Made by a program: the position numbers and the translations under genes. From NCBI GenBank assembly GCA_047495785.1, contig JBLDXI010000051.1:124001-188000 (forward strand): a DNA stretch of 64,000 nucleotides, written 5' to 3'. The notes below the pieces were generated by a model that was not told where the DNA came from, searched no databases, and worked only from the letters and a program-made list of their open reading frames with translations. Within the stretch, counting starts at the first letter, position 1. Every line of letters starts with the position of its first letter. Below, one piece after another: positions 59,253 through 61,860 of the stretch. The stretch is from Lepidodermella squamata. Its lineage: Eukaryota; Animalia; Gastrotricha.

Positions 59253-61386
59253 TCGAATTCTTATTTCGGGTGAACTTCGGAGCAGGGCGAGCCGGGTTGG
59301 CTGCTTCCAAGGACTCTGCTATGCCGGGAAAGCTCGACACGAAAAGGTTCGTAATAGTGGCGTTAACTAGCACAGCCATATTCGCATTCTTCCCAGCTTG
59401 CCGGGCTTGTTCCAGCATGGTTGTCATGCAGGCCGCCATCTTGCCGAGAAACGCGTACAAATCGGCTGTTGTCACCGGTCGCGAACCTTGACCTTGACCT
59501 TCAGCTGCGGCTTGATCCTGCTTGGCTGCTTCGAGCTTCTTCTGACGACGCTTCATGTTCTTCTTCTGCGATTTCGACGGCGACTTGACAAAATCGGCAC
59601 CAAGTGGACGGTTTTGGCCAGAGGCCTGCGAGCCCTCCTGTCCACGAGCCTGCAGCTCAGGTCCTGTCTTCGATGACGATGACGACGACACCTGCTGCTT
59701 CGAAGAATTATCCTCGACTCGCTTCTTTGTGGACTCGCTCAACTTCGACTGCTTCTGCTTCTGCTGCTGCTGCTGAAGTTCGGCTTTCCTCGTCTCGTAC
59801 ATCTCCTGCCTCTTCTTCTTGAAGACCGGGCATGAACGATGGCCAGAGGGGTGCGGCCTGACTGTATTGTCGCACAGCGAGCAAACCTTGACTGGATCCT
59901 CCTTCTTCGGGCACTCCGGCGCCCCACGCGAATGGCCAGCTTGAGCACAGTCAGCACAGCGTAACTCATTGTCGCACCGGGTGGCTGGGTGGCCGATACA
60001 CTGGCAGCGATTGCAAATGACCGGGCCCTTGTGGGTTTTCGGATGCCTAAAGTTCAGAAGCTTGCCGCAGAACGTGAAACCGCCCTCAAACTCCTTGACG
60101 AAGGTTGCTCGTTCCTCCGACTCGAATTCCATCAGCACTGGAAAGTGCCTGGGTCGCTTACTGCTCAACTTGACAACTCGCTTGACGCCGTAGTCCTTCA
60201 TGTACTCGAGGATTTCTTCTGCGGTCCAATCGCTCGACAGAGAGTCGGTAATCAGCTTATGCTTCTCAACAATTATCACATTGTCGACGGCCCTTCCCTT
60301 CTCGTCGAAAACCTTTCCTGACGGAGCATGGCAGACAGCGCCTCCAAAGGCAGGCTTCGAGTTGAGCCCCCAGTAAGTCGAGCGCTTGATCGACTCCGCC
60401 GAGAAAGCAGAACCGCAGACCAGCATCAGCCCGCCGCGCTGAAGCGTGCTAAAGCTCTTGATCACAGCTCCCGGTGCGATGCGATCAACCTCCTTCAACA
60501 CGGCTTTTTCGGTCGGCTTGCCAAAAGACAACGGGATCCGATCGATCATAACAATCTTAGCAGCATCTTCCTTCTTCCTCTCACCAGACTTCTTGTTCCG
60601 TCGTTGTTTCTTCTTCTTCGACTCCACCTTCGTGAAACCTTGATCCTGACCTGCTGCATCCTCCTTGTCCACATCCATGTCGGCATCGTCATCGTCGTCA
60701 TCCTCAGACAGGTTGAGATCTGCCTCAAGCTCCTTCAGAGGAATACGAGGCGACGGGCCAGCTTTGTTACGGGCCGACTTGTGGGGCAGTTCCTCCTCAC
60801 CTTCGTCATCGCTCAGTTGTGACATCGGTACGGTCTGGGTGATACCGCCAGGCTGCGAGTTAGTTTTCGCCTGCCTTTTGGCGCCACCCGTGGCCGTAGC
60901 ATTCCCCCTCTGGGTTTTACCAGAAGTAGGATTGCCTCCACCTCGTAGGCGAAGAACCTGATGCAACACGCCAAGCGCCTCCGGTGGGTCGCCTTGTCGG
61001 TTCTCAGCCCTCTGAGCTTTTAGCTCAAGATTGCGAGGATCTCCGACAGCTGGAACTACTCCCATAGCCTCTATCCTTGCTAAAGGCTGGTGCTCGTTAT
61101 TCGGGCCATAGGCCGTCGAACAACGAGGATCTCCAGCCGGAGCCGGACAGGGGAGCATCGCTCTGCCAACTTGGGGTCCTTCAAGGATCCAACCAAGGGC
61201 TTCGGGGACTCCTCGCGAAGCAGTGGCCGTCCGATGGACTTGCTTGCAATCGCAAGGCTTGACCTTGCCCGCTGAGCGGGCAGACCGATCAGAGTCGGAG
61301 CTCATCTCGGTGGAACAAACTACTATGCCCCTATGAAGTCCAGACATACTGGCTTCGCTTTTCATGCAGGGAAAGGGAATGCCCAA
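59239..61386 (-). CDS. E3 ORF1, about 715 aa: 150-aa leader ending LHQVLRLRGG + gag-like region with three knuckles
   Basis: CNRCQCIGHPATRC, CADCAQAGHSRGAPEC, CSLCDNTVRPHPSGHRSC. Start codon uncertain (tracked start is non-ATG; a Met follows 7 codons later). Confidence 0.9.
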   Translation of the reverse strand: MGIPFPCMKSEASMSGLHRGIVVCSTEMSSDSDRSARSAGKVKPCDCKQVHRTATASRGVPEALGWILEGPQVGRAMLPCPAPAGDPRCSTAYGPNNEHQPLARIEAMGVVPAVGDPRNLELKAQRAENRQGDPPEALGVLHQVLRLRGGGNPTSGKTQRGNATATGGAKRQAKTNSQPGGITQTVPMSQLSDDEGEEELPHKSARNKAGPSPRIPLKELEADLNLSEDDDDDDADMDVDKEDAAGQDQGFTKVESKKKKQRRNKKSGERKKEDAAKIVMIDRIPLSFGKPTEKAVLKEVDRIAPGAVIKSFSTLQRGGLMLVCGSAFSAESIKRSTYWGLNSKPAFGGAVCHAPSGKVFDEKGRAVDNVIIVEKHKLITDSLSSDWTAEEILEYMKDYGVKRVVKLSSKRPRHFPVLMEFESEERATFVKEFEGGFTFCGKLLNFRHPKTHKGPVICNRCQCIGHPATRCDNELRCADCAQAGHSRGAPECPKKEDPVKVCSLCDNTVRPHPSGHRSCPVFKKKRQEMYETRKAELQQQQQKQKQSKLSESTKKRVEDNSSKQQVSSSSSSKTGPELQARGQEGSQASGQNRPLGADFVKSPSKSQKKNMKRRQKKLEAAKQDQAAAEGQGQGSRPVTTADLYAFLGKMAACMTTMLEQARQAGKNANMAVLVNATITNLFVSSFPGIAESLEAANPARPAPKFTRNKNSNDLR

Positions 61387-61634
61387 ACCCTGAGTTACTC
61401 GGACGAAGCGTAGTACGCTAAACCTCGGTGAGAAAACACTAATAGCCTACGCCTATACTATAAGAAGCCTATCTCGCGATCTCAGGAGAGAGGGCTTGAT
61501 AAGGCAGCGAATAGTAAGAGGAGTGCTAGCAGTGCTACTTTTATCAAATCAAATGAAGCAATATCAGAATAATCCGAACTTTGCGTTAAAACACTTTGAT
61601 CATAGCCAAAAAGGCCGAGAAGCGAGCCGAGTTG

Positions 61635-61860
61635 CCACTAGTGTTAGCAAGATTGCTCTTATAGTACGTTGCGTTATATTCAGGCAGAAGGCCAGAGAAG
61701 AACTTATATTATTTTGTATAGGAATGACTGATTTAATGAGCGACAGCGCGTATATGGTCAACGCGAAACCAAGCTAATAAGAGAAATAGAGTTGCAAAGT
61801 TAGTTATTTAATGAGCCAATGTGCGCGTTCTAGTAGCTACACTAGAAAGCGTGTCGACAG
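61635..61860 (-). repeat. 226-bp 5'-terminal module of E3, identical to that of E2
   Basis: See 30128-30353. Confidence 0.93.

Follow-up and report, generated by a model that had tools for sequence, protein, structure and literature searches.

The DNA window analysed here, a 64,000-nucleotide stretch of Lepidodermella squamata contig JBLDXI010000051.1 (positions 124,001 to 188,000), carries three retrotransposons of the kind that lacks long terminal repeats (non-LTR), named E1, E2 and E3. The first open reading frame (ORF1) of E3, which encodes a Gag-like protein (ORF1p), includes the heptapeptide VLRLRGG. This peptide is the same as the last seven residues of ubiquitin, including the LRLRGG tail that ends in Gly-Gly. 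It is unchanged in all nine ORF1s found to carry it, and comparison of these sequences indicates that the motif is neither a chance occurrence nor independent of the copy in E1. We propose that VLRLRGG may be a proteolytic junction that is cut by a protease specific for the ubiquitin tail, most likely a deubiquitinase of the host. This is a tentative proposal, which we rate at slightly less than even.

The motif was noticed in a sequence-only reading of the window, in which the decapeptide LHQVLRLRGG was placed at amino acids (aa) 141-150 of E3 ORF1. Translation of minus-strand positions 60937-60966 agrees with this placement, and the decapeptide is in frame within a 715-codon ORF (59239-61386, minus strand) that is counted from a mechanically assigned TTG start. 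The first ATG is at 61365, and the leader from this ATG to the end of the motif spans 143 aa, with the motif included. A degenerate DNA pattern for LRLRGG matches just two sites in the 64 kb, at 3101-3117 and 60938-60954 of the minus strand, compared with 0.09 expected, and none of 100 shuffled sequences yielded two sites. Both sites are in frame inside homologous ORF1s, those of E1 and E3 (28% identity, E = 3e-24). The codons used for LRLRGG, which had been quoted correctly, are CTT CGC CTA CGA GGT GGA in E3 and CTT CGG TTG CGC GGT GGT in E1. Two further statements of the earlier reading also hold. ORF1 of E2, a more distant homologue (25% identity), lacks the motif, and the E3 leader is unrelated to the E1 leader, with the motif as their sole common stretch. 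Logan contigs of the one public run containing this DNA match positions 59239-61150, motif included, with 0 differences.

Relatives of these proteins were collected by an exhaustive hidden Markov model (HMM) profile search of 1.84 billion representative proteins, which yielded 4276 relatives, and the best 150 of these were inspected for the motif. Word-indexed protein searches were dominated by low-complexity words, those based on E3 ORF1 and on a 9-sequence profile giving only 1 and 4 relatives, respectively, and the HMM search was used instead. VLRLRGG is present at the same place in seven of the best 150 relatives (P0001, P0002, P0004, P0007, P0009, P0010 and P0038), all of which come from contigs of metagenomes or Logan on which there is also an ORF2 with AP-endonuclease (APE) as well as reverse transcriptase (RT). 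With E1 and E3 there are nine carriers, which share 25-50% mutual identity. The top seven-column window of the carrier alignment is VLRLRGG itself, with an identity of 1.0, compared with 0.59 for the next best window (a zinc knuckle) and 0.06-0.10 for the flanks. No other block in the N-terminal half of ORF1 is invariant. No degenerate version of the motif was found among the 150 representatives, and its presence is therefore all-or-none.

Each codon position of the motif shows synonymous variety (GTG, GTT, GTC and GTA for Val, and six codons for Leu), and synonymous change inside the motif is saturated between P0001 and P0002. The earlier suggestion that selection operates on the protein rather than on the DNA is thus supported, given widely different synonymous codons and flanks that are only ~6-10% identical. 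These same data bear on the possibility that the motif is an inert relic or a chance match, or that it is untranslated because initiation occurs downstream. Met codons do exist after the motif in E3, the next one 38 residues downstream, and these could serve for such initiation. Nevertheless, this explanation is highly improbable, because the heptapeptide is invariant across nine lineages despite saturated synonymous change, because two in-frame sites far exceed the number expected in the window, and because the leader frame of E1 contains 0 stops in 1218 codons, where ~40 would be expected and the other sense frames have 77-85.

The sequence-only reading regarded the E3 motif as a second, independent occurrence, which is not supported by the phylogeny. 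In a maximum-likelihood tree of 49 ORF1s, eight of the nine carriers fall into one clade of 18 (support 95/97), where they are placed among ten motif-less members. The ninth carrier, P0038, is located on a long unresolved branch. The pattern of presence and absence requires five state changes on this tree. Given this result and the placement of the carriers in one clade, with the motif at the same homologous place in E1 and E3, the two motifs are homologous, and common descent with losses is a simpler reading than independent origin.

The motif-less relatives are informative as to what the motif might do. For three motif-less members of the clade (P0003, P0006 and P0011), the ORF1 ATG is preceded at the DNA level by in-frame stops and AT-rich sequence, and both leader and motif are truly absent. 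The distance to the first anchor of the RNA recognition motif (RRM) is 44-212 aa from Met1 in these three members, versus 98-186 aa from the Gly-Gly in carriers. They thus encode directly the protein that would result from a cut after the motif.

The similarity to ubiquitin extends upstream of the heptapeptide. The consensus at the junction is (S/G)-N-L-H-x-VLRLRGG, and P0002 reads NLHLVLRLRGG, which is identical to ubiquitin residues 66-76 at 10 of 11 positions. Nearly all Protein Data Bank matches to this stretch of P0002, including every significant one, are ubiquitin or ubiquitin fusions, and these align to residues 65-76 only. The position corresponding to the buried Leu69 of ubiquitin varies and is frequently acidic, contrary to what one would expect of a conserved hydrophobic core, and the positions of the exposed His68 and Val70 are kept along with the tail. 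As judged from these alignments, the pattern would fit contact with an enzyme rather than maintenance of a fold.

We also considered a function outside the ubiquitin enzymes, such as a strand that packs against ORF1p, a signal for oligomerisation or localisation, or a new type of co-translational recoding, in which case identity to the ubiquitin tail would be historical (a captured gene fragment) or coincidental. Part of the motif is indeed placed in a short, low-confidence helix by AF2. However, a match of 10 or 11 residues to ubiquitin 66-76 in several members is hard to call coincidence, motif-less relatives manage without the motif, and the NPG or NPGP signature of 2A peptides was found in none of the ten ORF1s examined. 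A role of this kind is therefore unlikely.

A cleavage junction is the simplest account of these observations because the tail is invariant, the upstream sequence is free, relatives start at the would-be cut, and the residue after Gly-Gly is Gly, Ser, Ala or Met and never Pro. This residue reads G, G, S, S, A, M, G, G and A in the nine carriers and is never a destabilising N-terminal residue; for carriers taken to be independent, which phylogenetically they are not, the corresponding background product comes to 2e-4. According to our proposal, ORF1 would be translated from the upstream ATG as leader-VLRLRGG-Gag, and a cysteine protease that recognises the C-terminal tail of ubiquitin, most likely a host deubiquitinase, would cut after the second Gly during or shortly after translation. 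The released ORF1p would then start with a small residue and a disordered linker, which is the architecture that motif-less relatives encode directly. The leader would thereby be free to vary, to be replaced, or to grow by internal duplication. We infer the cleavage itself, the position of the cut and the enzyme. The motif is flanked by stretches that are modelled with low confidence and are probably disordered, so it should be accessible. Furthermore, the leader of E1 contains at least 12 transmembrane (TM)-like segments, and an uncleaved fusion would therefore anchor an RNA-packaging protein in a membrane.

Several other candidates were rejected. N-myristoylation of the new N-terminal Gly would be compatible with E3 and P0010, which fit G-x-x-x-S, but five of the nine carriers start with Ser, Ala or Met, and this cannot be the general function. 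The residue pattern does not fit a furin, Kex2 or signal-peptidase site, a judgement made by reasoning only. A protease encoded by the element was also dismissed, since Pfam searches of E3 ORF1 and ORF2 detected no protease domain. The protease would therefore need to come from a source external to the element, of which the host is the simplest.

A number of points weigh against cleavage by a deubiquitinase. Pfam searches did not detect a ubiquitin domain (PF00240) in eight leaders, even at E = 10, and two leaders, at 19 and 54 aa, could not accommodate the ~76-residue beta-grasp fold. AF2 predicts no structure, at low confidence, for the E3 leader and for the P0002/P0001 leader; the model for the P0002/P0001/E3 leader, with a mean predicted local distance difference test (pLDDT) score of 36, is uninformative. 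A whole ubiquitin domain upstream of the tail, found neither by Pfam nor among Protein Data Bank matches, was consequently rejected. The split-ubiquitin assay works because the C-terminal half of ubiquitin alone stays uncleaved. In addition, a search for RNA runs holding the element found none, and the one public run that holds element DNA is of unknown kind. For the database homologues, start codons are those assigned by gene callers to metagenome or Logan contigs, and no DNA could be read for P0004. The main objection is biochemical, in that known deubiquitinases depend on the body of ubiquitin, which they bind at an exosite, and LRGG peptides are very poor substrates for them (PMC7477763). 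With these points considered, the broader statement that a clade of animal non-LTR elements has an ORF1 polyprotein cut by host deubiquitinases at a bare seven-residue tail, with no ubiquitin fold, is possible but doubtful on the sequences at hand.

The poor performance of bare tails as deubiquitinase substrates (PMC7477763) makes binding without turnover chemically plausible. The tail mimic could dock, uncleaved, in the tail cleft of a deubiquitinase, a ubiquitin E1 enzyme or a tail-binding zinc finger as a pseudo-substrate that recruits or blocks its partner, and the leader would stay on. For example, ORF1p might be shielded in this manner from ubiquitin-dependent restriction. Binding in a tail cleft would demand the invariance seen at all seven tail residues, which goes beyond the minimal LxGG. 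However, docking leaves unexplained why the upstream sequence is free, at 19 to 1218 aa and including a multi-TM protein, why motif-less relatives start at the would-be cut, and why a small residue or Met follows Gly-Gly. We therefore regard it as rather unlikely.

The difficulty posed by the missing ubiquitin fold would disappear if cleavage were performed by a dedicated LxGG-type protease (papain-like, OTU or adenain-like) that is encoded in another element or by a lineage-specific host gene. Viral enzymes of the papain-like kind process polyproteins at LxGG in the absence of any ubiquitin fold. MERS PLpro, moreover, hydrolyses LRGG peptides (PMC7477763). Nevertheless, E3 encodes no such domain in either ORF, no candidate enzyme has been identified, and conservation reaches P7-P5 (V-L-R), beyond what an LxGG enzyme needs, which makes this explanation distinctly unlikely.

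If VLRLRGG is indeed a host deubiquitinase site, then the leaders are the parts that would be removed. In the nine carriers these are 19, 54, 91, 100, 124, 143, 156, 220 and 1218 aa long and are unrelated between lineages, with only those of P0001 and P0002 being alike. The E3 leader has the last 20 residues alone in common with these two. Internal repeats are present in the leaders of P0009, P0038 and E1, and in E1 they include a 951-bp unit that occurs twice at near identity, tandem units of 153 bp and 246 bp, and CCLACCLACCLA motifs. The E1 leader has a low recognition score, like that of a non-natural protein. Atlas and homology searches found no relatives of its repeat unit, and an Atlas search found none for the P0001 leader. 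In the one comparable leader pair (P0001 versus P0002), dN/dS is 0.65 for the leader, 0.27 for the linker and 0.14 for the RRM-CCHC core. Because of this difference between leader and core, and because the E1 leader lacks relatives and scores like a non-natural protein, the leaders look disposable rather than like functional cargo, being translated yet weakly constrained. The proposal in the sequence-only reading that variable cargo leaders are swapped in front of Gag is thus upheld with regard to variability, since leaders are wholly different between lineages, but not with regard to cargo.

Two additional observations concern the leaders. Between P0001 and P0002, dS is 0.69 in the leader (L001 390-656 compared with L002 135-374) versus 1.6-2.7 in the remaining ORF1, and this low value hints at constraint on the 5' region at the level of DNA or RNA, for instance through an internal promoter or a signal for translation. 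Also, the start of the E3 leader (61246-61356) exists in two versions in the sequencing run, with depths of 132 and 64 and five differing sites, and the genome therefore holds more than one copy of E3. Of the leader differences in a variant E3 unitig from sequencing run X1, 3 are synonymous and 2 are non-synonymous.

The remainder of E3 ORF1p (Table 1) has two RRM-like domains and three invariant CCHC patterns, as expected for an ORF1p of the Jockey/R1/I-like kind. Khazina and Weichenrieder reportedly assign the RRM plus CCHC type of ORF1 to Jockey/R1/I-like APE non-LTR retrotransposons. E3 resembles these elements in its tandem RRM-like domains that are followed by three CCHC knuckles, and in its ORF2 with APE and RT, whereas the N-terminal module of leader and ubiquitin tail lies outside the ORF1 architecture described for them.

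Table 1. Positions of E1, E2, E3 and their parts in the window, and regions of the AF2 model of E3 ORF1p (built from 18 sequences; residues numbered from the ATG)
Feature	Position	Strand	Remarks
E3, whole insertion in rDNA intergenic spacer	56148..61860	minus	6-bp duplication AGGTTA (minus strand)
E3 leader, first ATG to residue before heptapeptide	60958..61365	minus	136 aa; 5 Cys, 13 Pro; no TM-like segment; no predicted fold
E3 ORF1 codons for VLRLRGG	60937..60957	minus	60937-60966 adds L-H-Q upstream
Linker after Gly-Gly	60568..60936	minus	~120 aa, starts GNPTSGK; acidic/basic, G/S/T/P/N/Q-rich; predicted disordered
Tandem RRM-like domains	60055..60567	minus	AF2 pLDDT 82-95; Foldseek tandem-RRM E 4e-8
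Three CCHC-type zinc knuckles	59830..60036	minus	invariant Cys/His columns
C-terminal long helix, low-complexity stretch, helical end	59239..59829	minus	AF2 model; no Pfam family
E3 ORF2, AP-endonuclease and reverse transcriptase	56475..59252	minus	925 aa, intact
E1	5' end 6876; ORF 1057-6771	minus	ORF of 1904 aa
E1 leader, codons before heptapeptide	3121..6771	minus	1217 codons without a stop; 12 or more TM-like segments; internal tandem repeats
E1 ORF codons for VLRLRGG	3100..3120	minus	aa 1218-1224 of the ORF
E1 Gag-like part (linker, RRMs, CCHC knuckles, C-terminal region)	1057..3099	minus	homologous to E3 ORF1
E2	23834-30353	minus	15-bp target-site duplication
E2 ORF1	27509..29848	minus	distant homologue without motif, used as comparator
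AF2 model	residues 1-109		pLDDT about 30
AF2 model	residues 110-121 and 132-141		two short low-confidence helices, second overlapping motif
AF2 model	residues 140-263		low confidence, probably disordered
AF2 model	residues 267-437		two RRM-like (beta-alpha-beta) domains, pLDDT 82-95
AF2 model	residues 444-512		three CCHC knuckles
AF2 model	residues 513-558		long helix
AF2 model	residues 598-689		helical end

The window is filled by a ribosomal DNA (rDNA) array with a unit of ~8.46 kb. On the plus strand it comprises six 18S genes and five each of the 5.8S and 28S genes, and every spacer has a 5S gene on the minus strand. E1, E2 and E3, each with APE and RT, occupy one spacer each and are all on the minus strand. 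Their insertion points fall within ~25 bp of one spacer position, in the same orientation. This shared site is located ~690 bp from the 5S gene, between TTTTCTGAG and GTTAGT on the minus strand (reference spacer 15360-15374), and the element/spacer junctions are 6876/6877, 23833/23834, 30353/30354, 56147/56148 and 61860/61861. A donor-like sequence with a hairpin downstream is present at the shared site, for which Rfam yielded no match. E3 is an intact element (ORF1 and ORF2) of the APE type, as indicated by its ORF2 domains (PF03372, PF14529 and PF00078) and its target-site duplication, and the Atlas clusters closest to its ORF2 are animal, arthropod for most. The ORF1s of the three elements have diverged to 25-28% identity.

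Further features of the insertions were observed in passing. An identical 226-nucleotide segment is present at the 5' junctions of E3 (61635-61860) and E2 (30128-30353), both on the minus strand, and outside this segment the two elements are unrelated at the DNA level. Its depth in the sequencing run is several-fold above that of E3, and it may be either a separate short insert or a common 5' module of E2 and E3. The E3-specific 5' untranslated region begins with a degenerate sequence resembling U2 snRNA (61467-61626, minus strand; 32 bits, E = 9e-5, below the Rfam gathering score), which may have arisen as a template-switch chimera or may be what is left of a past target; no comparable counterpart was found in E2. 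The 28S gene of the fifth unit carries ~397 bp extra (54121-54517) at ~3147 of 3720 with an 11-bp flanking duplication, and this is probably a 5'-truncated rDNA-specific element.

A precedent for an N-terminal separation signal in non-LTR ORFs, and the nearest analogue in function, is provided by 2A (StopGo) peptides, which occur in the N-terminal region of ORFs of L1Tc, Ingi, Rex1, CR1, L2 and Crack (PMC3708506, PMC3894237). Like VLRLRGG, 2A is a conserved peptide of few residues that lies close to the N-terminus of a non-LTR ORF, between a variable upstream peptide and a functional protein, and is present in some elements and absent from close relatives. However, 2A acts by ribosome skipping between the NPG and the P of D(V/I)ExNPGP, whereas a ubiquitin tail would need a protease, and VLRLRGG sits before a Gag-like ORF1 in two-ORF elements, unlike the 2A cases. 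Natural ubiquitin fusions (polyubiquitin, ubiquitin-eS31 and ubiquitin-eL40), the nearest analogues in sequence, have the same ...LHLVLRLRGG-X junction, at which deubiquitinases release the downstream protein. These fusions carry the whole 76-residue beta-grasp fold, whereas here only about residues 66-76 are recognisable and the sequence upstream is unrelated or too short.

Viruses provide another comparison. Coronavirus PLpro, a papain-like protease with deubiquitinase activity, processes the viral polyprotein at LxGG, and cytopathic pestiviruses carry insertions of host ubiquitin. The likeness lies in a site resembling the ubiquitin tail at which the polyprotein of a selfish replicator is cut, a cut that is only predicted for E3. 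However, coronaviruses bring their own protease and need only LxGG, whereas E3 has no detectable protease and keeps seven residues. Pestivirus insertions are of whole ubiquitin, and elements of the E3 type keep only the seven residues.

Full-text literature searches found no paper that ties LRLRGG or the ubiquitin tail to a retrotransposon ORF1. On our proposal, the module would be a processing route through the ubiquitin tail that has not been described for retrotransposons, and it would act as an N-terminal separation signal of a non-LTR ORF. If the site is cut, retrotransposons would have a second route besides 2A skipping to free a structural protein, one that borrows a universal host enzyme system, and this would account for the replacement or expansion of 5' regions with no damage to ORF1p. 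Such a site would, in addition, allow a natural test of what portion of ubiquitin a deubiquitinase requires, and could serve as a seven-residue cleavage tag. Should the enzyme be a host deubiquitinase, these elements would be the first retrotransposons known to be processed by the host ubiquitin system and a natural case of deubiquitinase cleavage that is independent of the fold. Any N-terminal protein could then be carried by them and shed, even one as long as the multi-TM leader of E1 with its 1218 aa. Even if the site is not cut, an invariant mimic of the ubiquitin tail on a Gag-like protein would still point to a direct interaction between these transposons and the ubiquitin machinery.

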